Assembly (NCBI GenBank): GCA_039096225.1
Contig: JBBPEB010000002.1
Coordinates: 1,116,001-1,180,000 of the forward strand
Reading direction: 5' to 3'
DNA: 64,000 nucleotides
From: Blastocystis sp. Blastoise
Taxonomy: Eukaryota; Protista; Bigyra: Opalinata
Below, one piece after another: positions 7,024-64,000 of the stretch (position 1 is the first letter of the stretch; each line of letters opens with the position of its first letter). Under the pieces are notes generated by a model. The model did no database searches. It was not told the origin of the DNA and saw nothing but the letters and a program-made list of their open reading frames with translations. A program made the translations under genes and the position numbers.

Positions 7024-10000
7024 TTAAACTTTGACAGCAGTAACGGGTGCATTACTAATAGTAGTATCAAATCGACTTTGTTGAATACGTTTTCCTGTTT
7101 TCTTGGGTATATGACTCATATGAACACGTTGTAATTTGGGATTTAACTTTTCATCATAAGATTTCGTACGGATCTTGATCTTCTTTGTACGGTGAACAAT
7201 ACAAGAGACGATAATTAATAGAGAAAGTACGATGATGATGCCTATAACGGCAATAATCCATGTAGGTAAATCTCCATTAGGAAGAATAGTAAGATTAATA
7301 GAAACTGTAAGTTCTCCAACTTTATTATGACAAGTCACATTATATATATTGGAATCATAGATACCACGAGGATTTCCACTAATAATACCATTTATATCCA
7401 TAGAGAGACCTGCAGGCAGAGATGGAGTAATAGAACATGAATATTCTGCAGCTTTTACTAGAGGAGCGATGTTTATAGGTCTATTATCATAACCAATAAT
7501 AGTGGAAGGAGTATATATAATTCCCGCGGGAGCTAGAAGTGCACAATACTTCGTTTCTTCTTCTAATTTCCCTTCTTTACATAATCTTTGAATCCATCCT
7601 TGATAATATATAGCACAATTCTTTAATGCATACTGACCTTCTAAAGCACCACCAAAACCATCTATAGGTAAACATACATGTGTAACTAATTTCACTCCTA
7701 AAGTTAATTCCGCTAATTGTATACCCTTTGAAGAAGATCGATCATATAAACAAAAAGTATCCGTTTCAGACGCGTCATCTATAGGATTATTATCACAATT
7801 TGTTACTATAAAACGATAATGACTAAAACTCTTATTATTAAAAAAAGAATAATCACGGGATTCACGATAGGTAGTAAATAATTCATTATCCACAACTGAA
7901 AGAACACTCCACGTGACTCCATCATTAGAACCCTCAATTCTCCATCCACTTGGATGACGTACATTACAATTTGGTCCAGTAGTAAGTGAATAAGAACTAA
8001 TATATTCTTTAATATCATTTTGATATGTATACATATAGGTAGCCCCAATACATCGTGGACCTGATAATGCTACAGTAGTTGTATCACCATCCATAAGATT
8101 CGATAGAGAAGAAGATTCAATATCACTTGATAACATACCTTCTTCCATTCGACTTGTACCATCACCTACTAATAATAAGGAAGCCATTAAACTAATAACA
8201 GATTCGAATGGATCAGATTGATGTAATTCTATACATAATACATTATTTCCTGCAGTTATAGCTCCAAATAAAATAGATATTGAATACCCATAAGTAACAG
8301 CAGTACTCTTTAATTCTATTGCAGGTATACTCTCTGTAATAATACCTTCAGGTAAATTTTCTCTTTGTATTTCTTGTCCATTAATATACATAACAAACCC
8401 AACACATGTTCTTATTCGGATAGTAACGGATGCATATTTAGATATATTATGAATATTAAATAGATGACGATAATAACTAGTAATAGCTTTAGGAGCAGGA
8501 AGAGTATCGGAAGTAATAGTAGACCATGTAGTATCTATAAAAGTGACTTGTGTCCATCCTTGAGTAGGTATACCTGCTAAATATGTTTTCCATTCACTAT
8601 AAAAAGGATGAATAGGATAAAGAAGAGATAATACCATCTCTTTCTTGGTAAATGAAATTCCTAAAGAACCTGAAAGTATTTGTGTTCCATCTTCTAATGT
8701 AACAGCATAAGATCCTCCATTCCAGCCATCATCATCTAAATCAGTTACTACAAACTTATAAATATCCATTGGATGGCAAAAAGGAAAAACATTTTGAATA
8801 TTACTATTTACTCCTTGTTTAGAATATAGAATAGTATTATTACTATTATATAAAGTAAATCCTTGTTCAGCTCCATAAATACCTCCATTAATAATAATAG
8901 TAAACATAATATTAGGAGATGTACAAGCAATAACTTCAAGAGATATTAAGACATGAGATTCAATACCTTGAGGACTTGTAGCATATATCGTATAACTTTG
9001 TTTAGATAATAATTCCACGGGAATACCACGAATAGACCCTGTAGTTGTATCAATTTCTAAGGGAGAGGGTAATTCTGGTAATATTCTAAAGTTACTATAA
9101 AGTTCTGAAGAAGGAGTAACAGTAGGAAAAGCTATACCACGATATCCAGTAAGAGAAGTAGCTGATAAACTAAATACAGGAGGTATAAACATTTTACTAT
9201 TTAATAATAATAATTCAATTTCAGCAATAGAAAGAGAATAAGGAGAAGTAGTTGGATCACTTGTTTCAGATACTTCAAATTTATAATAACGATATGATTT
9301 TAATTGTGTAGGAATATAAAAACATCGTTTTTGTTTACGTACTTCAAAATAAGCATTATTGACTTGATGAATAAGTGAATAACTAAGATTATTGGATGAA
9401 CCATATAATATCCAATCAGAAGGATCACTTCGAGGTTCATTTGAATTACTAATAACACATAATTTATTAATTAATTCAGATCGATGTGCTCCAAAATCAA
9501 TAGTAAATGCAATATTACGTTTAGAAGCGAATGTATGACGATATCCATTCGTATAACTACCATCAATTAAGGCTTCTGGATTCCCGCCATAAGGAGTGGA
9601 GGTAACACTAGGAGAGAAATAACGAGGATGAGATGTAGTTGTAGTTAAATAAAATACAACGAAATCAAAATCAAGAGATATAAGAGAAGAAGAAGAACTA
9701 ATACCAATAATAGCAAATGCAAATATATTAATAAACACTTGCATATAGGAAATAGGTAATGTAATATATCTCCAATCAACTAGTCCTTCTCCTGCAGTTG
9801 CACTAGTATTATTTGTTATTTCTCCTTCTGGAACATTATCACGATAAGCTTCTTCACCATTTATATAGAGCACGATTCCCGCGGAAAACCTTACTCTTAA
9901 TTCCATACCTGTATAATAACTATTATAAGTATAATTCACTTTATCTCTAAATAGCCAAATAAAAGAAGTTGTTTCAGGAAGAGGAGAATAAGACATACTA

Positions 10001-11645
10001 TGCCAATTTTCATCATTAAAATTAGTTGTATACCATTCAGAAGGGACATTATCTATACAATATTTCATAGAGGAACTATTTATATAATGACGATAAGTAG
10101 CATCTAAATAAAAAGTATCTGAAGATCCATCAGGTAACGTGTATATTCCCACGGGACTGTAATCACCAGAAATCATATAGGATATTGTTAAATAACTACT
10201 TTGTGACCAACCATTGTTTCCACTATCTAATAATTCAATATATGTCATTCCCGCGGGGATACATAGATTTGCAGTAAGTGTAGAATCCGATACTTGTGGG
10301 GGTGATGAATATAATATTTGTCCTCCTTGTTTTAAGGTAAAACTTTCTTCAGAAGCGTATTCAGAATATGTTTTATATAATTGTATAGAAATATTATAAG
10401 GTAATACACATCCATAAATACGTATAGTAACAGTACAAGAAGAAGTAAGTGAAGATAATATATTATGTGCAGTAATCATATATCGACTAGTACTCATGAT
10501 AATCGTGGGAATCCCAGAGATAATACCTGTATTTGGATCTAAAGATAGACCATGAGGTAATGCAGGATCAATAGTAAATTGAGTGAATCCTGTAGTAAGA
10601 GGAATATTATAAATATTAGTCACATAAGCATAGGCTTCCATAGAAGTATTTGTATATTTTAGTGTACCATCCATAGGAGAGTAATTACATGAATATACAT
10701 TGAAAGAACCAAGAGATATAGAAGTAGAAGAAGAATCTATATAAGGTATATATATATATATATAGTAGAGAGAATAGTAAATAAATATACTAAATAGTAT
10801 TAATACTACTAAAGAAAATAAATAAATAGATATATATATTAAATACTTAATTGTAGTTTAACAGCTCTAAATGATTTTAAATTATCTAATAATTTATAAT
10901 CATATCGTTGATTTCGACTTGTAAAAACAGCTTCTTTTGAATCTAATGGAATCCATGACACACCATCTTGTGACGCACTGAGGGTCCAGGACGTGGGATC
11001 TCCATATGCTGCTGTATTGGCAGATGTTATAGAATAAGCATTAAACCAATATAATCTATAATGAAATTCATAATATAGATAATATAGATATTTTTTAATA
11101 AGCATAATAATAAATATAATAATAATCAGAATAATAATAATAATAATAATATATATATAGATATACTCTGTAGAGGGTAATGTATATATGGTAGTAAATG
11201 ATCCATGATTTGGAACATAGTAATAACTAAGATCTGACTCATATATATTACTACAAGCAAAGGTATTAGAGACAGCAGCATAGGAACAGGTCGCTTGTCC
11301 CGCGGTTAATAAACTTGAACCACAAACTATAGAAGGATAATGATAAGTATAATGATAAATATAGGAAAGAAACATAAATTTAAAAAAATAATAATGATTA
11401 TAATAATAAATATAATGATAAGTATAATAATAAATATAGGAAAGAAAAATAAGTTTAACAAACATAATAAATATAACAATAATAAATACCATTTTCATTT
11501 CTAATTTGAGATCTAACAATTGCAGCGAATTGATCGAATTGACCAATGTGTGACGCATTGTAATGAATCTCTATAGCTATGACACCCAATATGTCATAAC
11601 CAAATAAATGACGAATAACAGTTGTACTATATAATAATAATAAAC

Positions 11646-11692
<47 letters not shown>

Positions 11693-12816
11693 CATAATAA
11701 TAATAAACATAATAATAATAAGTAAATCTATACGTATAATCAATAGGTTCTTCAGAATCAGGAGATGTTGTAACAGTTGAACTATTTATCACGCCACTAT
11801 AATATATATATTAAATAATAATAAACATAATAAACATAATAATAAGCATAATAATAATAATAAACATAATAAACATAATAATAATAATAAACATAATAAT
11901 AATAATAAACATAATAAACACAATAATAAACATAATAACTTCAATTTACGTTGGTAGTTTTTGTCTTGATAATTCCATGGAATCTCCGTATAAAACAAAT
12001 CCTCCCGTGGTTCTGATAGTAAATAATAATTCATAATGAGTAGTAGGTTGTGAAAATAATGTACTATATCGATAATACCGAGTAATACCTACTAAAGGAT
12101 CAAATAAATCACGATGGCCATTCATCCAATCAGAATCAACATAATTCACATTTGTCCAATCAGAGGATACTTGTATAATATCATTATATTTATAAAGAAC
12201 ACTTGAACTAATCGACACAGATACTAAATAAATCAAAATATTATTTTTATTACATTATATATATACATATAGATATTATAGAATCATAAATCATTGTATA
12301 AATAAAATAATAAATCATATAAGTAATATAATCATTATATACATATAACATAAGTCTGATCAACACAATATAACCAGAAAGGATCTGTACTAAATGGCAT
12401 AGTTGTCTTTGTAACTAAGAAATCATCAGCATAAACATATAACCATGATTCACTATTGTAACTACCCCATCCATTACAAGATCTAAAAAAAATATTATAT
12501 TTATAAAAGATCTAAAAAGATATACAAGTCATATAACTCAATCTTATATTGAGATGGAGGAAGACATAATGTCCATTCTTTAACTTGATGAGAATCAGAC
12601 TCACTTGCTTCAACAGCTATAATAAGATCTAAACTATCTCCATTAACTTGGAAAACACTGAAACGCTCTTGATCAGCATAGTCTCCATAAACTTTTTTAA
12701 ACTTAATATTTCCATTTGGTGCTAAGCATGACCCAAAAGCTAAAAATAAAAATTATATTTAAATATTTAAACTCTATACCTATAGTAATCAAAGAAATGA
12801 ATATTAATATATTCAT
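7024..12816 (-). CDS. Large type I membrane surface protein with putative Ig (He_PIG) repeats and F5/8-like / galactose-binding-like beta-sandwich repeats
   Basis: Signal-like MNILIFISLITIAFG from ATG 12816. Repeats PALPHGLSLDPNTGIISGIP, PELPSPLEIDTTTGSIRGIP and PSLPAGLSMDINGIISGNP; PxxWxLxGSxDG motifs; C-terminal TM (WIIAVIGIIIVLSLLIIVSCIV) and basic tail. Several 5' introns precede a ~3.7-kb final exon. Confidence 0.8.
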
Positions 12817-13070
12817 TGCATACATTCAAAAATAAAATTATAAATTAGACAATTGATTTCTTAAAAACAGGGGTCACCACGTAGTTACTCGTTAAGCGAA
12901 AGGACCAAAATTTTTGCGCTTAAATAACAAAGTTACTTTTTTATTACCGTGATTTTCATAGTTATTTTAAGTGATGAAAACACGGGAAAAACAAAAATAT
13001 AAGGGAAAATGTTTTGCTAAACCAAAAAGAACATTCTATATTAGATAAACTTTTTTTATTGTTTAAATAC

Positions 13071-15804
13071 ATGGAACAGTACTTTAAAAAATTACAAGTA
13101 TATTAATAGTAATATATATATATATATATAGATTGACAAGTCTACAACAGACGAAAAAAAAAAGATGATGACATAATTACAGAAGAAACGAATAATAAAC
13201 CAGATATTAATCCTAAATCCAAATATTATAGTGAAGTAAAAGAAGGAGTTAAAAGATATAATGCCAATCCAGTTGTTTATGGATTTAAAAAATTAACAAA
13301 AAACTCCTATTTTTGTTTAATCTGTGAGTCTACTCTCACGTGTAAAGGTTATGAAGCCTCAAAACTCTTCACTCATTTCAAGAATAAACATGGGTTAAGC
13401 AAATACACATATGATGACATTCAAGAACTCTTAAAAGATCATAATGAAAACACAGAATACTCAAATTCTCTCTTTAGCTTTTCAGATTTATCCAGTAAGC
13501 TTTCATATTTCATCGCCTACTCCATTTCAAAGAATGGATACAGCTACAGAACTGGAGAAAAATTAGTTAAACCTATTATTGAAGAATATGAAAGGTTAAA
13601 GAATGTCAAAGTCCTTTCTAATCTTCCGTTATCCTCAAGCAGTATCAAAAGAAAAAGTGATGAAATTGCTTTGACAATTCAACAAGAAGTAATAAATAGG
13701 ATAAGACAATCAGGATCATTTTCTATTCAGCTTGACGAGTCAACTGACATAGAAATGAAATCCTATTTACTCGTTTATGCTAGATACGAATATAATAAAA
13801 AGTTTACTGAATCATTTTTAAGTATTTTTCAGATTAGTTCCAAAACAGGTGATAATATATTTAACATGGTAGATAATTTCTTTAATAATAATAACCTTCT
13901 GTGGAATAATTGCGTATCAGCTACTTTTGACGGTGCTTCGAATATGAATGGAGACAAAAACTCCTTCAAAACACGAGTACTAGAGAAGAATAAGAATTGT
14001 ATGTTCATCCACTGTTTTCTTCATAGAGAAGAACTCTGTGTAAACTGTTTACCAAAATACTTCACTAATATATTCAAAAGTGCTGTTGAGATAATTTCAT
14101 ATATAAAGAAGTCTGCTGTTAGACAAGACGAATCCAATAATTACAATATTGATAATGAATATTCATTAACCTCTTCTATCTTCTCTCCTCAAGATAACAT
14201 ACCTGATTCCCCTAATAATATATCTTCTTTAGAGATAGAATATAATAAAGTAGTTGAATCCCTTTTAGATACATCTGATACAGATAATAATATAGATAAT
14301 AATATTCATGAAGTTTATAGTAATGATAAGAAGGAAGAAAAAAAGGAAAAAAATATTAGAAGTTATAAACTTCTCCTTTATTGCCCTACAAGATGGCTTT
14401 CATGCCATTCATCAATTAAAAGATTTAATTTACTTAGAAATGGAATAACACTAGTAATAAAAAAGGATAAAGAAAAGAAGGACTTATATAACACCATTAT
14501 TGATACTAACTTCATAGCTTCAATGTTATACCTTGAGGATGTTACCAGTTTATTCTATGATTGTAATAAATCAATGCAAGGACAGCATAGATATATATTT
14601 GGGTTAATAGACATTATGAAGGATTTATTTATAAAATTATCGTTGAGATTAGAAAGACTAATAAATAATAACGATTATTCATCATTTACGAAACTTAAGG
14701 ATTATGTATCTACAACCAAGCTTGATATTAATTCAATCATATTTTATATCAAAAATCATCTAATAACTCTTCGACGTAATTTACTGAATTATTTCCCAGA
14801 AATACTAAATTATATTGGTAGTGATGAATCGTATCTTCAAGACCTTAATGAATATTTAATAGACCAAGAAAATACACATAATACATCAAATATATCTCAT
14901 GAAGTGAATAGTAATGTTAATAACAATACATCAGTAGTATCAAACCAATTTAATATTCTTGGATCATTACAAGGTTGCGTATCTCCAAATGGAGTTGTAA
15001 ATGGCTTAATAACCTATGTTGACATAGTTACTCAGCAATTAATAGAAACTCAAGTAACGATTAGAATTGACTTTCCATATTTAGTATATGGATACACTTT
15101 AGGTAGTATTTCTGGTGTTCTTAATAATTTCCCTAATAGTAGTATTCAAGGACAATACAATGGAATCATTAGTAATATAAATATAATTCAGGCTAATATC
15201 AATTGTATAATAACTCTTGGGGCAATCATTCCAAATGAAATAAGTAATAATACAAATCAAGGAGAAGTACAAAAGAATAAAAAGCAGAAGAAAACGAATA
15301 GTAACATAAAAAAACCAAAAAATACACCAACAACTAATCTTATTGATCATTCTTTATATTGGATTACTAATCCATTTTCAAAAGTAGCTGACGAAAATAA
15401 AATGGAGTTTCATGTTAAAGAAGAGTATTTCTGTTTACTTGCTGATAAAACATGTAGAGAAGAATTTAATAACGTACCAATAGATGAGTTCTATATAAGC
15501 CATAAGAGTCGTTTTCCATTATTATATGATATAGCCAAGAAATGTTTTCTTCCCTTTGCAACTTCATATCTCTGTGAGAGCGGTTTCAGTCATCTCGTGT
15601 ATATAAAAAACAAATACAGAAACACTATTAATCCAACAACCCAAATGACAATTGGATTAACTTCTGATATCATTGATTCTTCATCACTTATAACTACTGT
15701 TTTAGAGCGTATGTATATTATAAGTATTATATTCATAATTCACATAATATAGAATCTATTCTTAATTATATATAGATAAATTAAAGAAAAAGAAACTCGA
15801 TTGA
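13071..15804 (+). CDS. hAT transposase (Buster/ZBED5-SCAND3-like) with N-terminal BED-type zinc finger
   Basis: Motifs CLIC...HFKNKH, FSIQLDESTD, ATFDGASNM, HCFLHRE, TRWLS and SYLCESGFS. Short introns at 13098-13131 and 15709-15775 (C-terminus LEHKLKKKKLD*). Exon 1 is one frame off from the main ORF across an A10 run at 13154-13163. Confidence 0.9.
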
Positions 15805-16399
15805 TAACATCTAGCAACAAAATCACTAATCTAATCCAACTACTTAATTACTGTATTTATACTACAAAGTACATTGATTTCTTTTACTATTAATATTTAT
15901 ATATTTATATTGTTTTCATTATATTAACTATTTGTATTCCATAATGTTTTATTGTTACATTATAATTTGTATTGTTTTAATTAACTCAAGAAGATATACT
16001 GTTATCTTTTAAATATAATTATAAATAGATGACATTGAATATTCCTTTATATATTTGATTATATCAATAGTATATAGTTTCTTAATTAGAATCACTATTC
16101 CTTAATAATTTTTATCTATATTTCAATTATTTTTCTAATTATATTCTTTTTCAAGTACTATTATATTCAGATCAAACGAATAACTGAGAAATATTATTAC
16201 TTATATGAAAAATAAATATTATTTTAGAAGTAATTATTTCATATATACTAATCTCTCTAGTATAATACTTTAAAACAATATCCAATACTAATAAGAATCT
16301 TTATTCAATCAAAAGTATAATATACAACTATAAAGTATACTCTTCTTAAATCAAATAGTATATCTAATCAAGAAGATTAAATATATAAATAAATAGCAA

Positions 16400-19300
16400 A
16401 ATATATTTTCAATCATAATGTATCAATAGAAAGAACCAAATAACTACTAAAATCATTTACCTGACTTATCAATCAAATATCACAAAGAGAGTGATAACAA
16501 TTGGTTCCTAAAGAATATACTATTTTCCAAAACATATATATAAAGTGGAATCTTAAATCGTTTACACCAACAATTTTATATTTATACATGAATTCAAAAG
16601 GAAAGAGCAAGATGTGTTATATCTATATTAAGTATCATATGAGGGATTATATATATCCGAAAGAGTATTAGAATATATGATATAATAGAAAGTAATGTGG
16701 ATTTTATATTATAATAGCATGAAATAAGTATTAGATTAAGATTCATGATATTATATAAAGGTTAGCATTTGAAAGATTATCAGAAGAAAAATTATTGGAA
16801 AGATTGACATAGACTTAATGAGAATATATTTATATATGTAGATCATAAAGAAGATAACTAAAAACTTGTAAATAAAATTTGAAGTTAAGAAGAAGGAAGA
16901 ATGCATATATCAACTGAATTTATAATCGGCAGTGATAAATGAGTAGAAGAGACGATAATAATTATTTTTAGTATATTTTTAAAGACAATAACATGAAGAG
17001 AGAACAATATTCGTATAAAAATATATATAAATCTATAAATAGAAATACAATAAATAAACCATAAGAAGTAATAAGAAGTTGATTTCTATATTATATCATC
17101 ATGAGTAAAAGAACAAACGGAGTAAATTGTATATAATAGTTAGACATTGTATAAATAATATGAAGTAACGGCTGATAACGGAAAAAGCAGGTGTAAATAT
17201 ATATAAGCATATTAATTATGTACATATGCACTTAAGAAGATATAATATCTAAAGTAATAGAAATGAAAATAAATTTAGAAAATAAACAATTCGAGAACTA
17301 CCTCAACCGTATTCAACAAAATAGAAGAAATACAAATAGTATTATAGTATTCATATCAGCATGAATGTAAGATGTATATAGATAATAAGTTAAAGGGAGT
17401 TGAAATGGTTTAAAGTAAATAGAGATAGTATTTTATTAAATAACAGTACGAAAGAAATATGGAGACATAGATCCTATTATATAATTATATCATTTTTGGA
17501 AAATGAGAGTAATTAGAAATGAGAAAGAATAGAAGGAATAGAAGGTGTAGATACTAGGCTTTTATAAAAAATTAAATAAGAAGAAGAGAATGTACACAAT
17601 AATAATAAATAAGAGTAGCCATATAAATATGTTTAAGTAACAAAAAGAGCAAAACCTTAGAATGAAGAGAAATAATAAAAATATCTTTTGTGGTATATAG
17701 ATAATAGTAATACAACAATGAGAACAAATCCTAACTTTGATTACTAAAATCCATGATGAGTAGTGCCAAGAGAGAAATTGTTGGAAAGAAAAAGAAAGGA
17801 AACGAACGAGAAGAATTATAAAAAACGATAGTAAGAAATAGGACTAATAAAAATATTCAAACCCATATTATTTAGACAAGAAATGGAAAATGCTTCTGAA
17901 ATAATAACTGTGTAAATAGGAAATACAATAAACATGAGCATTAAAGAATATGAAGAGAGATAATGATGAAGCAGTATTAAAATGAATAAGTCTAATAATG
18001 AGCACACAATATACACAATAGAAGCACTAGAAATAAAAGAAAAGTGGATAAAGAAATAGAGATAATGAGGAAGTATAGGATTAAAAATAGGCACAAAAAT
18101 AAGTAGACCATGGGATAATATATAGAACATGAGAAAACGAAGAAAACCATAAATGAAGGATATGAATATGTATATGAAGAGTATATTTGAATGAAATATG
18201 AAAATAAATTAATTGAGTATGTTTTCAATTATAGAAACAAATATAAAAATAAATCTGTTAGAATAATAAAACTAAGATATATAATAATATATAATAGTGA
18301 GGAATTTGTAATTATTAAAGGAAAAGAAAATCGTCATTAAATCTCATAGTATGTTTAATAGAGAAATATGAAACGACTATTAGAATAACATAAGAACATA
18401 AAGAATTCTATCATAGGAGAAAAAGGAATATCAACTAAGGATAATATAAAAGTAATATAAAAATAGCACATCTAGAAACTCTTTAATAAAGGGAAAAGAA
18501 CATGCAGGTGAAGTATTACGAATGATCACATAATAATTGAAAAGCACCAGAAGAAATGAAGAGTCTAATAAATATAAAGATACCATACGAAGAAGATAGG
18601 AAGAGACTGAAAAACCAGAAAACTAATACAATTAATGTAATGCTATAATACCTTAAAAGAACAAAAGATGAAATAAGATAAGGAAATAAGATAAGGTTTA
18701 TAACTAAAAATTCAATATATAATAGTAGACTAACGATAACATGAAGAGAAGTTGAAGAATAATTAACCAAGATGAAAATATATACAAAGAATAAAAAGAA
18801 ATTCAAAAATTTTATACAGAAAACTACAACAAAGAAATATCATATAGATACTTTCCTGTATAATAGCATATTAAAGAATTACACAATAAGATACTAAAAC
18901 ATTCAAAAACTTATAATAGTAAACTTGATAGAATAAGAGTACATGATAATATTGTAATATAGACAAAAGGATTTAAGGATGAAAAGAAATAAACATCAAT
19001 TGTTACTAATCTGCTACTATCTTCAGTAGAAACTTATGTATGTTAGTAACCATAGTAAGTATTAATCGCAGAGATGAAGTGTTTAAGTATTTATTAAATA
19101 CTAGAATAAGAATAAGAAAATTCATAATAAGTAAATCTATAAGAAAATGTCATCGTTATATATAAATACCATTATAATACAGTATGAAAAAAGGAAGTAT
19201 CAGAAAAATAAAAAACAAAAACAAAATAATTAGCACTTATAAAGTAGAACAAGCAATCAAAAGCACATTAGTCGAATAAAATCAAACATACAAACAACAT

Positions 19301-19750
19301 AAATAAAGATCTCATTAATCGCAAAGTTACAAAAAGAAAATGAGTATACTAATTCAAGAAGAGAAGTAAGGAAGTTTGGTGAGTAACCAAATCAGATGTA
19401 AATAATAAATGGAAGGCAACAAACTGTAAATATTCATAAAATTATACATTGCAAGTAATCATTCCAAGAATAAGTAACTGATAAGTATCCATCACGTAGC
19501 ACATTGTAAGATATGTGTATTGAACACTGATCATAACGAGCAAGTACGTAACAAAGCAATCAACAAACAATGGGAAATCATCATGTAGTAGATATTGACT
19601 AGTATTTAAGAGGAGTTCACAATGCAACAAAAACCAATATGAATCTTAATGATAAACCATTATTAGTTCAGAAAGCAGATAGAAAGCAAGTTTGAAAAAA
19701 TATTATAGGCAATAATCTTATTCTGATTTGAATCTTTAACAAAAGAATGA
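16400..19750 (+). other. Purine-rich, stop-riddled coding-like relic, possibly a decayed retroelement, inside the hAT element
   Basis: Strong A/G bias on the + strand, no intron-type microsatellites and no intact ORF; only weak motif echoes (IFIYVD near 16830, T*HIV near 19495). Confidence 0.25.
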
Positions 19751-19805
19751 AATTATCATTGAAATTTTTAAAGAATGACTGAAGTTTTAAAAATAATCAA
19801 ATAGT

Positions 19806-19880
19806 CAGTCCTTTCCTGACTTTGGTGACACTTGCCACCAAATTTTGTGACACTTTTTCAGCCATGCTTAATTCTGCTGA
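19806..19880 (+). mobile_element. Left end of a second hAT-type element, related to the MITE at 47004
   Basis: CAGTCCTTTCCTGACTTTGGTGACACTTGCCA...TTCAGCCATGCTTAA aligns by eye with the MITE left end CAATGTCTTCCCTGACTTTTGTGACAATTGCCA...TTCAGCCAGACTTAA. Confidence 0.65.
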
Positions 19881-20089
19881 ATTTATCAAACACATAAGGA
19901 AGTTTTTTGTAACAAAATATGATACTCATGAGTTTTGTCATCAGACTGAATGAAAGGCTTTTCACCTTATTTGTATACATGGCCATAAATCATAATATTT
20001 TTGACAAAGTTAACCTAAATATCAAAAAAATGTCTTTATAAATGAGCAAATAAAGCTATCATTTATTTGATATAAGCCATCAAACATAT

Positions 20090-26850
<6,761 letters not shown>

Positions 26851-27387
26851 TTTGTTATCAAAAATGAAATAATATTCCTTTTAAATATAAATAAGAAAAT
26901 AACGATCACTATAATAAACTAATATACAAATAAATCAATGAAATAATAATGATAAAAAGCAATTATAATATAATTAATATAAATACTAAATAAACCTTAT
27001 AGATAACGCACAATAAATACTCTTGAAAAATACTGATCATCCTGCACTATAAAATAAAGATAAATCAAATAAATATTACAAATGAAGAAACGAATTATAT
27101 ACAAAAAATATTTGTTGATCCATTTGAACCATCTGGAATGCTATAGATCCTGATTTCACAGTATAAAGAGTTGTTTAAAAGCTAAAAGCCTTGATACCTA
27201 AAGAAAGAAAGTAATTAAGTAAAGCAGATTATAAAAATTAAAATAAATACTCAAGGCGAATACTCTTGATAAACTAAGTTAATTAAATTAAACCAAAATA
27301 AATGATCGTATCAAGAGATAATCAAAATAAATATATAAAAGAACAAGTTTCATAAAAAGATGTTTTTCCAAGAAATAAAAATAAAAA

Positions 27388-27460
27388 TGCCTCTTGCGAG
27401 ATTCGATCCAGCGACAATTACCATAATAGCTACAGCGCTGGTCAACTATACCAACCGATT
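27388..27460 (-). ncRNA. tRNA-like Pol III unit (A box, B box, oligo-T) without a cloverleaf, copy 1
   Basis: Minus strand reads TTGGTATAGTTGACCAGCGC...GGATCGAATCT...TTTTT with tRNA-like spacing; the acceptor stem does not pair. Confidence 0.5.
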
Positions 27461-27751
27461 TCTCAATTTTATTTTTTCATGTGTTCTATATAATAAGTTT
27501 AAAATTATTTGATATCTTCAAATATTATATTTATGCTCTTTTATTACATTTATAACATTCTAGAAATACTTAGAATTGTTTTTAAACAATAATTACTATT
27601 TTTTGAAAAAAAAGTTTGTTGATATGTTGATTCTAAACTAAAAAGCAGATATCAATGATGTAAATAATGTTTACAGATAATAAAAATGAAACAAAGTTGA
27701 TTTTAAATAAAATCATTGTAAATAGCAGTCAAAAGAAAAAGTTTAAAAAAA

Positions 27752-27824
27752 TAGTTCCTCGTAAGATTCGATCCGTCCACTATGTAAAAATTTTATACGC
27801 ACTGACCATTTGACCAAACAACTC
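27752..27824 (-). ncRNA. tRNA-like Pol III unit, copy 2
   Basis: Minus strand reads TTGGTCAAATGGTCAGTGC...GGATCGAATCT...TTTTTT; 365 bp from copy 1, with a similar upstream flank. Confidence 0.5.
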
Positions 27825-29775
27825 CCTTATAATATTTTTCATCAAGTCATATAATAATTGCAAAGCTAGTGACTACTAACCGTTTTTTTATTTTTTTATT
27901 TTTAAACATAAAAACAATATATTTTATAATATAAATATTATAAATGTGTTGTGTGACTTATTCTACATATAAAATACATTTTAAAACCATTTTATAAGGC
28001 TATTAAAAATCATTTTGTTGGACGTATTGTTTTTTCAAATCCAGCTTTTGTTCATTGTATTGTTTTTTGTTTGATTTTTGAAAAATAATATTTTAATATG
28101 CTTTTCGTTTATTTAATTTTTATTACTTGTCAGGATGTATCTGTACAGTCCCTACAAGACTACTTCATGATATTTTATAAAAATAAAAACTTTTTAATTA
28201 CATTATTATTTTTTATAATATTTTTTAGTATTTATTGACATTATTTTTCATTATAAACATAAATAAAAGTCTTTAAAATAATATACAAAAGAATATCTTA
28301 AGCAATTGACTTTTGTCACAAAATAATTTTTATTTGTCACCCAAATTAACACAAATAGTCAAATATAGGAATCATACTTGTTGTTATTTGATGACTTATG
28401 AACTTTTAAGTCATGTATCTGTCACAACATGTGTCACAAAAATCTTCTTAGATGACTTATTTCAAAACATTTATACATTATATATCAAAATAATATGTTT
28501 TAAGTTAAAAACTGTCATGTCATAGTATAATAGTCAATGAATGAATTACTTTTTTATGTCACCCGGTCTTTTTTTCATGAAAAGTGTGTAAATTAATGCG
28601 TCTTGATGAGCTGAGTTTGAAAATTTTTTGACCACTAATAATCAGTATTTAGCCAATTTAAAAGAATTCAAAGTTTTGTAAAAATTTGAAGCATGTATTG
28701 CTATTATGATTCTACTACTACTATATTATTAAGATCTACACATAATCACGCTTTTTTCCTAATTGTTAAATACTTAAAGACAATCAATCATTATAACTAC
28801 ATGATTAACATTCTAAAAATGCTAAAAAATTCAATTTGCTCTCTAATTATAATATGTGTAAGGTTATTATTTATTCAACAACAAATCAAATTACATCAAC
28901 AAACACAAACCTCGTGTAAAATGTCAAAAACATCATTATTGAGCTTATCTCGATCCTCTAAAAATTATTAAACGTTTTATTCTATGTAGATTTATAAAAA
29001 TTAAAAGAAAAATGAAATAAAAGATTTAAGCGCAAAAACAACATCGAAAAGCGCACTTTGCGCTTAAAGCGCAGTTTTGGCACACCCTGCTTAAAAATGT
29101 GTCTTATTCTTTTGATTTCAAATCAAATCAACTGTTCTCCAAAATCAAGAGAATAACCACGGTTTTCTCCAAAATTAACATTTAGAATCACACCAACAAT
29201 AGTCAGCCAATAAATTTTCTAGGAACAGAAACGCTTAAAAATAAAAAGTGATTTTAAGAATATAAAATACATATTAATACATAATTTTCTAAATATATTA
29301 AATATTTCATGTTCAATGCTTATCATACATATGTTTGCTTTGTAAAAAGCTTGATCATACAATTCAATGTGCAGTGATGAAATTGTTTTATAAGTTCAAC
29401 AATCTCTTTTAAAATTCCATAGTCTGAATAACTAATATTTAACATTCTAATAATTCGATTAAAACAAAAAAAGAAAATTCATTAAGAAAGAGAAAACTCT
29501 TTTGATATAACTTTTGCTTTTAAAATAATGACAAATATATTAAAGGTGTATAGGAAATTAATAAGCATTCATATGAAGTAGTTTAAAGCATATTTGTTTT
29601 CAAGAACTAATCGTATAAAATATATTTTTGATCAAATACACATTTATCTAAACATTTTCAACGTTGTATGCTTAGGAAATTAATTTTATTTATATAGTAT
29701 AAGAATTGTATCAGAAATTCATTATCATACATACAACCTTATTCTCAGATAGGTAAATAAGAGATTAGCTAACAT

Positions 29776-29846
29776 GCACCAGTGGTCCAGTGGTAAGATA
29801 GTTCCCTGCCACGGAACAGACCCGGGTTCGATTCCCGGCTGGTGCA
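29776..29846 (+). tRNA. tRNA-Gly(GCC)
   Basis: Acceptor stem GCACCAG/CTGGTGC, anticodon arm GTTCC-CTGCCAC-GGAAC, T arm CCGGG-TTCGATT-CCCGG, and a downstream T run. Confidence 0.97.
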
Positions 29847-30327
29847 AATTTTTATTTTAAATATATTATTTTAAAACAAAAGTCTATTAAAATATATTAT
29901 TATAACTGTTTTTTAGCAAGTAGATTATAATGAATAATTCACAAAATTTAAAACAACTTTTAGATATGAAAAAATAATAATTATCATACTTCTGAAGCAG
30001 ACAGATAATTCAAAATTTGCTTTGAGTGGCTCTGAAAAAGCATGCTAGTGATGATGCTTATTAAATAAAATGAAAAAACAATATTATAAGAATCAAGTCA
30101 ATCTCATTTTTAAGATAAGTTTTCATCAGTGTATCCATTAAGATAAATAACTAAATTATGGCTTTCCTATAATTAGATATATATTTATAATGTTCACGAA
30201 ATAAGTAAAAAAGTAAAAAAAATTCTTTCTAAAGAATTCCCAAGAAAATGAAAATAAAAAGAAGTTTTTCTAGACTTTAAAGAAGAATCATACATTTGCT
30301 TTATTCAGAAGAGAATAATTTATAACG

Positions 30328-47367: not shown

Positions 47368-55859
<8,492 letters not shown>

Positions 55860-56477
55860 ATATATTATTATTATTATTATTATTATTTATATTTCTTTTG
55901 TTTTAGAAAGATAAATTATTTTATTTATAGACTATTTATGTTATTTTTTATTTTTCTTTTTGGCATTACATGAGTATACCCTGACAGCTATGATAGTTTA
56001 TATTTTAAATTGGAACATTTTATATGTATTTGTGAATGACGTCTTTCTACTTTTTGTTTTAAGCTGACTTAAAACCATATTTAATTTTATAAAACTTCAT
56101 TATTTTCGATGAGTAGCTATTATTTATTAATCATTAAAACTATTGATTTTTAGGAAGTGAAGAACGAGTCAGATATACCTTTTTAGAGTCGTTTTTCTCA
56201 ATCTCCTTTTCTTGGATATACGTATTATAATTGGCTTATAAATTATTTTAGCCAATAAAAATCTCAAATATTAAAGTGACAGACCCAATAGCAATTTGAG
56301 TTGATCAAAACAAAGAGAAATTAGCATAAGAACCTTTAATTTTTATACGCAAATTGATACAAACCAAATAACTGTACATGTATTTTTAAGAAAAGATTTA
56401 CAGTTCGCAAACCTGATAACATTTTGTTGTTTATATTTTTGAATATATATTTTTTAACCAAAAATTTCTCATTAAAA

Positions 56478-61928: not shown

Positions 61929-62418
61929 TTCAAAAGAAATAATGTGCAATTATTATTCATTTTTATTGTAAAAAAATATTCTGTTATTATATTATATGTT
62001 TTGTTGTCTTTATTAGTATAGAAAATATAATAGACTTTATAAAATTAATAATTTATACAAAATTCTTTATGACTATATTACTTTTTTAAATACTACGATT
62101 TAAACAAAATTGAGACATATCGCGATGTTACACTAATAATATTATGGTCTTTAAATCTATTTATTATAATTATAACAGAATTTTATACAAAATATTCATA
62201 TCGATAAATTTGAATACAGCATAAAAATCAGTAAATAAATACCGAAATATATTCTATATTAAGTGTAACATTGCATATAATACATTTAGAATATATAATA
62301 TCTTAATTAAATAAGTAACTATGAATAAAATAAAAAATAACATAAATAGTCTATAAATAAAATAATTTATCTTTCTAAAACAAAAGAAATATAAATAATA
62401 ATAATAATAATAATATAT

Positions 62419-62465
62419 TTATATAAGATTATTCATTGAGAATAAATGTCGAATAGTTGGTCGAC

Positions 62466-62505
<40 letters not shown>

Positions 62506-62574
62506 TATAAAATATATATATACCCATGAGGACAATTCCAAGGCTGATTCATTTCGGATAAATGACGAACTATC

Positions 62575-62625
<51 letters not shown>

Positions 62626-62699
62626 TACTTTAACCATTTGTTTATATGTTAAACTCGTTCCTATCATTATACTATATCTATATATATATATATATATAA

Positions 62700-62730
<31 letters not shown>

Positions 62731-63626
62731 TACCTGCAAGCTTGACTAGCAAAAAGAGTAGATACTTTAGAAGGTCGAGGAAGAAGAGAAGATATATATA
62801 TAGAAGACATATTTGTAGGAATAGAAGAAGGAAGAAGAGGATGATCTTGAATTTTATGTAATAAATCATAAAAATCTATTCATAAAATATAATAATAATA
62901 ATAATAATAATAAATATAATATACCTTCTATATTAAATATATGAGATCGAATAGAAGGAACACCAATAATTTTTGCATATTCATTTATACCATATAATTG
63001 ATTATCATCTTCAATCACATGCTCATTATTCATCTCATCACGTACATAAAATAATATCTTAAATCCATTATATTCAAATATATATTTATAATTATCTAAT
63101 AATTGAATATCACTTGGAGTTAAACATAAAGAATTTGGACTATATAATAATATATAATATATAATATATATATAATACATTAATAATGGTTGAGTAGAAA
63201 TTGTAGTATTTATACAAATTGATTCATAATTATATTTTTCATCACAAGCATGTTGATCTAATATATAAAATTCATTCTTATATATACATATTATAAATCC
63301 TTTATTAAATTGACCAATTATATGCATATATTGAAAATCATCTTTATATAATATTTTACTTAATATTTTCTCTATTTCTTCTTTATCTTTATTATCTTCT
63401 TTATTTCTATATATATTTAATATTTATATATATATTTATTTTATTTATTATATATTTATTATATATTATATATATTTATATATATTTATATATATTTATT
63501 ACAATTTATTATTTTCTAATATCTTTCTATCATTCATTTCTTTATCTTCTTCTTCTTTTAATCTATATTTTATACTTCGATTTATATTCTTACATATATC
63601 TGAAATATTACATTTATAATTCTATA

Positions 63627-63658
<32 letters not shown>

Positions 63659-64000
63659 TTATTATTATATACTTTAGATTTCATTTCATTTGATTTCATT
63701 TTATTATTTATATTAATATCTAATAATTCATTTTCAAATAATTCTATATGATTCTCTTTTATAATCTCTTCTATTCTTTTATCTTCTTCATCTTCTTTTA
63801 TATCATTATTACATTCATCTATTATCATTTCATTATTATTATTATTATTAGTATTAGTATTAATAGTAGTATTATTATCAATAGTATTATTATCAATAGT
63901 AGTAGTATCAATAGTAGTAGTATCAATAGTAGTATTATTAATAGTATTATTATTATTATATTCATTATTATTATTATTATTATTAATAGTAGTAGTATCG
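62419..64000 (-). CDS. PMS2: Second PMS2 copy (3' part; continues beyond the window), inverted duplicate
   Basis: 62327-64000 is the reverse complement of 54212-55954; exons appear identical and intron microsatellites differ in length. Confidence 0.9.

Follow-up and report, generated by a model that had tools for sequence, protein, structure and literature searches.

The window analysed here, a 64-kb stretch of contig JBBPEB010000002.1 from the genome assembly GCA_039096225.1 of Blastocystis sp. 'Blastoise', in all likelihood contains one copy of an autonomous DNA transposon of the hAT superfamily that occupies positions 12868-29089 and is 16,222 bp long, a reading to which we assign a probability of roughly 85%. 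The element carries its own transposase gene, with about 13 kb of passenger DNA lying between this gene and the right end, and judging from the sequences it belongs to a family of at least 19 nearly identical copies that underwent a very recent burst. Throughout, positions are numbered on the window, which has a G+C content of ~24% and contains poly-Asn tracts and TA/AAT microsatellites. The source is a stramenopile, a gut protist of a tortoise, and the DNA is not of human origin. The assembly is based on long reads (PMC12129017).

The element is bounded on both sides by the 8-bp duplication characteristic of hAT insertion, here a perfect repeat of CTTAAAAA. The chance that two 8-mers at fixed positions would match, given the base composition, is ~1.7e-4, and this particular 8-mer occurs five times on the plus strand of the window. 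Immediately inside the duplication both tips carry CAGGG, which agrees with the YARNG tips of hAT elements, and on the plus strand the right tip of the window copy ends ...GGCACACCCTG. A degenerate pattern describing the tips (CAGGGKNNNCCA) matches only these two sites in the 64 kb, where 0.03 matches would be expected by chance; between 12000 and 29100 CCCTG/CAGGG is found at a single further site, at 25141, with no other CCCTG in that range. The two ends also share a 15-bp subterminal inverted repeat, TTTTTGCGCTTAAAT (E = 4.6e-5), and of the seven AAGCGC motifs in the window five are located in the ends, four at 29028-29072 and one at 12916-12921. Taken together, the ends and the duplication are far beyond chance. 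An earlier note on this DNA, made from its letters alone, had described a perfect target-site duplication, imperfect CAGGG-type termini, a 15-bp subterminal inverted repeat and extra AAGCGC motifs at the right end, and our analysis bears out all four of these observations, the tip pattern being unique in the window and only two AAGCGC motifs falling outside the ends. The features of the element are collected in Table 1.

Table 1. Features of the hAT element in the window copy and of a nested insert found in two other copies.
Feature	Position	Strand	Basis or remark
Left 8-bp target-site duplication, CTTAAAAA	12860..12867	.	Direct reading; consistent with the nTnnnnAn preference of the copies
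Left terminal inverted repeat, CAGGGGTCACCA	12868..12879	+	Homology begins here in 18 of 18 other copies
Left subterminal repeat, TTTTTGCGCTTAAAT, with one minus-strand AAGCGC inside	12911..12925	+	Similarity and motif search
hAT transposase gene	13072..15804	+	Short first exon from ATG at 13072, main frame, small last exon ending at 15804
A-rich non-coding passenger, ~5 kb	15805..20763	.	No gene, RNA or transposon relic detected; common to all copies; receives the nested inserts of L010 (16122) and L002/L012 (17270)
UTP20 fragment, exons with Pfam UTP20_N profile positions 3-276 of 615	20764..22852	-	Gene model of 611 or 642 aa in other copies
Many-exon gene part upstream of the UTP20 fragment	22893..27400 (upper limit approximate)	-	Gene model of 619-625 aa, or of 1152-1183 aa where joined to the UTP20_N part
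Right subterminal repeat, TTTTTGCGCTTAAAT inverted	29024..29038	-	Similarity search
Cluster of four AAGCGC motifs, putative binding sites of the transposase (BED-type finger)	29028..29072	.	Motif count; analogy with Hermes
Right terminal inverted repeat, CAGGGTGTGCCA on the minus strand	29078..29089	-	Direct reading
Right target-site duplication, CTTAAAAA	29090..29097	.	Direct reading; perfect match to the left
Nested Helitron-like insert, 6.5 kb	L002:14201-20689; L012:14201-20691		Junction reading

That the element encodes its own transposase, as the earlier note had proposed, is supported by an intact gene. Its main frame, assigned to 13137-15725 in the gene model, stays open over 871 codons at 13137-15749, and with the first exon and a last exon of 10 codons it gives annotated proteins of 869-882 aa. 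The frame is 100% identical to a protein of Blastocystis sp. 'Blastoise'. Over all copies the annotated product varies from 842 to 882 aa and in two copies is split into two models, and these differences in length trace to small insertions and deletions and to differing models of 5' splicing. An identical, intact 882-aa protein is encoded at nine loci, and nine sequence variants make up the 90% protein cluster. In Pfam, the match to DUF4371 reaches 18 bits, below the cut-off of 32; precomputed database domains comprise DUF4371, FAM200-ZBED5 RNase-like and FAM200-GTF2IRD2-like. A profile built with 13 homologues matches the Hermes transposase structures in PDB (E = 1.6e-10). In the alignment of homologues D205 and D209 (within DESTD), D270 (within DGASNM), C298, R424 and W425 are invariant and H297, H301 and E819 are nearly so; the D/D/E, CxxH and RW residues expected of a hAT transposase are thereby conserved. 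A CxxC...HxxxxH arrangement (FCLIC...HFKNKH), in which H85 is nearly invariant, was seen by eye in the translation, and Pfam gives no zf-BED match. By these comparisons the predicted protein combines a DDE core of the RNase H-like type with a hAT dimerisation domain at its C-terminus, as a hAT transposase should, and it presumably catalyses transposition. Such a transposase would bind to the subterminal motifs of the AAGCGC type, cleave the DNA at the CAGGG termini and insert the complete unit elsewhere through an 8-bp staggered cut at nTnnnnAn-like sites. The closest relatives outside the Blastoise genome share 25-32% identity with the protein over between one fifth and one quarter of its length, the top match from outside Blastocystis being 25% identical over 28% of the query; the transposase protein search yielded no further hAT protein from this genome.

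Evidence for movement of the whole unit comes from the other copies. Using variants of the transposase gene we fetched 19 loci on 12 contigs, a count that is a lower bound and that includes the window copy itself (L018, JBBPEB010000002.1:1119071-1141804, which corresponds base for base to window 3071-25804). The DNA fetched for the other copies reaches the equivalent of window position ~25,810, so that comparisons among copies cover 12.9 kb. In 18 of 18 other copies homology begins exactly at window position 12868, beside unrelated flanks and genes, and the 15 of them that lack large nested inserts match without a break, at 99.8-99.9% identity, to ~25,810. The shared stretch takes in the transposase gene, the 5-kb spacer and the UTP20-related genes, annotated at equal offsets in each copy. 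Among the 15 copies there are substitutions in just 17 columns of the 12.9 kb (mean pairwise difference 0.03%), and the remaining differences are short insertions and deletions, mainly in simple repeats. The 8-mers flanking the left end, for example AATGACAA in L001, CTATTGAG in L003 and CTTTTGTT and AGGAAAAA in further copies, mostly have T as their second base (13 of 18 copies, p = 0.002) and A as their seventh (12 of 18, p = 0.02), which is the nTnnnnAn target preference of Ac/Hermes-type elements; the left flank of L019 has the T at position 2 and no A at position 7. An apparently identical target site in L012 proved to be an alignment artefact.

Because 15 copies match without interruption through the cargo, the cargo moves with the element and was not gathered after landing. 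The earlier note had left two histories open, movement as one unit or growth by nested insertion after landing. The 18 copies with the same start base and unrelated left flanks, 15 of which match through the cargo without a break, favour the former; the note had asked for further copies carrying the same cargo at different target sites, and these were found, as judged from the left flanks and from the DNA as far as ~25,810. With an intact transposase gene and many near-identical copies at different sites, the sequences indicate that the family has been active recently. Neither element end was found in exact scans of metagenome and prokaryote genome collections, and a motif search for the right end gave nothing in the fetched loci, which reach only ~25,810; the other copies are presumed to share the same right terminus.

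Called genes spanning an element's left end were absent from the fetched loci, and several copies lie within 50-350 bp of the 5' end of a gene. Three of the 19 copies are situated just upstream of large genes with a He_PIG (putative immunoglobulin) domain (window 7024-12825, L014:2960-8073 and L019:5459-8246), and for the window copy the distance to the 5' end of the He_PIG gene, as annotated, is ~35-45 bp.

The passenger DNA contains, as the earlier note had recognised, a fragment of UTP20, a gene of the small-subunit processome. On the minus strand, the exons at 21646-22266 and 20939-21598 correspond to positions 3-121 and 177-276 of the 615-position UTP20_N profile (E = 1.5e-23), and full-length UTP20 proteins align by tblastn only to window 22869-20781, at approximately residues 750-1150. 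Their C-terminal halves have no match in the window. The upstream gene models would supply the residues that precede the aligned part, and the passenger thus represents the 5' ~45% of a UTP20 gene together with its upstream region. The many-exon gene part presumably corresponds to the N-terminal region of UTP20, which is poorly conserved (the first ~850 residues), plus 5' flank; its extent is drawn from the older paralogue described below, and the other copies cover it to 25,810 only. On the sequence, then, the cargo is cut off inside the predicted UTP20_N domain and lies on the strand opposite to the transposase gene. The entire ~13 kb, the 5-kb non-coding stretch and the opposite-strand UTP20 part alike, would now travel with the element. 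In a representative protein library the best match of the 205-aa UTP20 exon is 40% identical and no 'Blastoise' protein is among the matches, and the element's 611-1183-aa gene products were not returned by profile search or by region-limited search. A look-up found no called gene for a 92-aa open reading frame at 28693-28968. Long AAT/TAT arrays in the cargo (22373-22458 and 22910-23206) read as poly-Asn or poly-Ile of 70-100 residues, and differences in length between copies fall mostly within the triplet tracts of the cargo.

An older copy of the cargo is present at L002:1402-7992, inverted and 1.8 kb from the young element at that locus, where it lacks element ends and is annotated as a 794-aa gene. 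It corresponds to window 22,404-28,314 and is ~92% identical overall and 95-98% identical in most 100-bp windows. This paralogue may be what remains of either the donor or an older element, and from it and from the truncation of the cargo we infer that the cargo was captured from the host. Near L002 1526-1535 it is interrupted by the tip (CAGGGTGGCC) of another hAT-like element. We considered purifying selection on the cargo and rejected it, the paralogue being ~95-98% identical throughout with no contrast between exons and introns.

The other components that the earlier note had placed in the cargo were not supported. For the supposed decayed relic, tblastn with 19 hAT proteins detected no second hAT relic; where a nested hAT end had been suggested, the interior showed no AAGCGC cluster, no similarity to either end and no CCCTG/CAGGG with subterminal motifs; and for the two Pol III-like units, neither a tRNA nor an Rfam RNA nor a B-box turned up within the element. 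The only tRNAs in the window, at 29775-29847 and 52813-52885, lie outside the element. The nearer of them, a tRNA-Gly(GCC), begins 686 bp to the right of it and provides the sole B-box match in its vicinity.

Three copies carry additional DNA. L002 and L012 are on different contigs with different flanks and contain the same 6.5-kb insert at the equivalent of window position 17270, 99.89% identical between them. The insert begins with TC at its 5' end and closes with a G+C hairpin (-19 kcal/mol, z = -4.6) followed by CTAG, and it sits between A and T without duplication, as a Helitron does. It is non-autonomous, as no Rep/helicase open reading frame was found in it. Around the insert L012 matches the window and was followed to 19,312. 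In L002 the hAT copy breaks off at window-equivalent 17401, where a (CCCTGG)n array takes over; the array, with ~138 units at L002:20822-21608, is telomere-like or interstitial and lies ~67 kb from the start of JBBPEB010000033.1. Since L002 and L012 share the same nested element at the same base with different flanks, the 22.7-kb composite of hAT and insert was probably itself mobilised, the alternative being gene conversion between copies. Variants carrying a further nested element would probably still have been mobilised. A different insert of 4.1 kb is present in L010 at 16122; this copy, followed to 23,593, has in addition a 1.8-kb deletion (21,270-23,072).

The 4.1-kb repeat occurs in the window as well, at 48666-52778, where it is 95.6% identical to the insert in L010 (L010:13049-17182). 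The repeat terminates with a G+C hairpin and then GCTTGT, and in the window it stops 35 bp from a tRNA-Thr(AGT) gene at 52813-52885. Further along, in a region of 14-17% G+C, an inverted pair of 1.7-kb repeats (54212-55954 and 62327-64000) is 95% identical.

Several points weigh against reading the 16.2 kb as a single mobile hAT element. The right terminus, its duplication and the last 3.3 kb (25,815-29,089) are seen in the window copy only. The terminal repeats are imperfect, with matches at 8 of 12 bases, or at 10 of 13 alignment columns with one gap per arm. The transposase scores 22.3 bits against Pfam Dimer_Tnp_hAT (PF05699), just above the cut-off of 21.4. No empty site (expected as GATTTCTTAAAAATGTGTC) was found in the window and the fetched loci, and no genuine, full-length UTP20 gene was located in this genome. 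Finally, transposition is something we infer from the copies. As the comparison among copies covers the DNA up to ~25,810, the true right end might lie anywhere between ~25,815 and 29,089, in which case the terminus at 29,089 would be local, for instance belonging to a different element as a solo end, with the 8-bp match arising by chance. Yet there is no other CCCTG/CAGGG and no AAGCGC in 25,815-29,000, the right end has an exact copy of the 15-bp subterminal repeat of the left end, the duplication is perfect (p ~1.7e-4) and the older cargo paralogue continues to 28,314, and we consider a merely local right end quite improbable.

A second question is whether a small hAT landed and then grew in place, the 16.2 kb being a local accumulation of nested insertions. 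Individual copies do carry inserts, as L010 and the L002/L012 pair demonstrate, and to those copies nested insertion does apply; it does not explain the basic 16.2 kb. All 19 copies share the interior as far as they were followed (15 to ~25,810, L010 to 23,593, L012 to 19,312 and L002 to 17,401), and there are neither internal ends nor a second transposase relic, which contradicts growth in place for the first 12.9 kb. Recent segmental duplication or gene conversion, acting without the transposase, would likewise leave copies of very high identity. However, the homology of every copy stops at the same base, the tip of the hAT terminal repeat, the flanks are unrelated and on 12 contigs, the flanking 8-mers follow the hAT target preference and the window copy has its perfect 8-bp duplication. 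Because the copies share start base and interior and have unrelated flanks, growth after landing is excluded for at least the first 12.9 kb, and so is plain segmental duplication; overall we hold growth in place to be highly improbable and copying without transposition to be barely credible. It is conceivable, too, that the unit is real and mobile as one but was moved in trans by another hAT, or is no longer mobile, and the variation in annotated protein length, with two split models, could be taken in this sense. The small indels and splice models noted above account for that variation, though, and with the same intact protein at nine loci, conserved catalytic residues and no other hAT protein of this genome returned by the search, dependence on another element or loss of mobility seems very unlikely. 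An autonomous element that moved as a whole remains our preferred interpretation.

On that interpretation, at least 12.9 kb with the transposase and the front half of UTP20 has been placed at at least 19 sites, by an element three to four times the usual hAT size. Long-read assemblies of the tortoise isolates measure 26-33 Mb at 21-23% G+C (PMC12129017), and 19 or more copies amount to ~0.3 Mb, or ~1% of such a genome. The genome paper gives bulk repeat fractions only and is silent on hAT elements in its main text (PMC12129017); the family described here is a concrete, young contributor to that fraction. Size is apparently no hard limit for natural hAT transposition, the element has tolerated a further 6.5-kb insert, and a single element can multiply a large part of an essential gene. 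Among gut eukaryotes Blastocystis is the commonest (PMC12129017), and the element is a candidate endogenous tool for large-capacity gene delivery or mutagenesis in this organism. A bolder account is doubtful, namely that this is a currently active hAT moving 16-23 kb which has brought the 5' half of UTP20, an essential gene of ribosome biogenesis, to ~19 copies in an open, spliceable form, that this shortened UTP20 might be expressed and be of consequence for the element or for the cell's ribosome assembly, and that horizontal entry into the lineage might be recent. The last of these suggestions arises because the search returned no relative from other organisms above ~32% identity.

hAT elements are normally 2.5-5 kb long, and Hermes of the housefly and Ac of maize, at 2.7-4.6 kb, contain a transposase gene only. 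The Blastocystis element shares with them the 8-bp target duplication, the nTnnnnAn preference, short imperfect terminal repeats starting with CAG, dissimilar ends studded with subterminal repeats (AAGC/AAGT in Hermes, AAGCGC here) and a DDE transposase with a C-terminal hAT dimerisation domain whose profile matches the Hermes structures. It differs in its 16.2 kb with ~13 kb of passenger DNA and in the low identity of its protein to described hATs. A possible route by which a hAT element could come to carry many kilobases of host DNA is offered by the Ac/Ds macrotransposons, in which two nearby elements move the DNA between them. Such a macrotransposon keeps two inner ends, whereas here there is no inner end (CCCTG/CAGGG with subterminal motifs), no AAGCGC cluster and no remnant of a second transposase, and an origin from a pair of hAT elements was rejected on these grounds. 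The nTnnnnAn preference is described for elements of the Hermes/Ac type, and the BED finger of Hermes binds its AAGC/AAGT subterminal repeats (PMC10368747); the AAGCGC motifs are by analogy a close parallel to these repeats and putative sites for the transposase. The DUF4371-bearing hAT transposases like ZBED5, GTF2IRD2 and ZMYM1, together with their domesticated relatives, have the same set of domains, with the DESTD and DGASNM motifs in common. They are mostly domesticated single-copy genes or elements of animals and plants, whereas the present one is a multicopy mobile element of a stramenopile.

Fragments of host genes between hAT ends, amplified by transposition, are also the hallmark of Pack-TYPE elements, Pack-hAT among them, and of Ds-like elements filled with gene fragments (maize and rice), and the UTP20 5' fragment is such a fragment. 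Pack-hAT elements are non-autonomous (PMC8903248), gene capture has been called rare in the hAT superfamily, and the non-autonomous Ds-like elements are short, Ds-l4 having a modal length of ~1 kb (PMC3260210). Pack-TYPE elements lack a transposase gene; here an intact one is retained together with ~7.5 kb of gene-derived DNA. The 14-kb class II element ToxhAT/ToxTA of fungal wheat pathogens, the best-known case of a supposed hAT with cargo, has terminal repeats and passenger genes as well, but is single-copy and non-autonomous, and because it makes TA duplications and has been reassigned to Tc1/mariner (PMC12506042) it is no hAT precedent. The element of Blastocystis sp. 'Blastoise', in which, apart from a putative BED finger seen by eye only, every hAT feature tested is present, is thus an unusually large, autonomous and very young member of a known superfamily.

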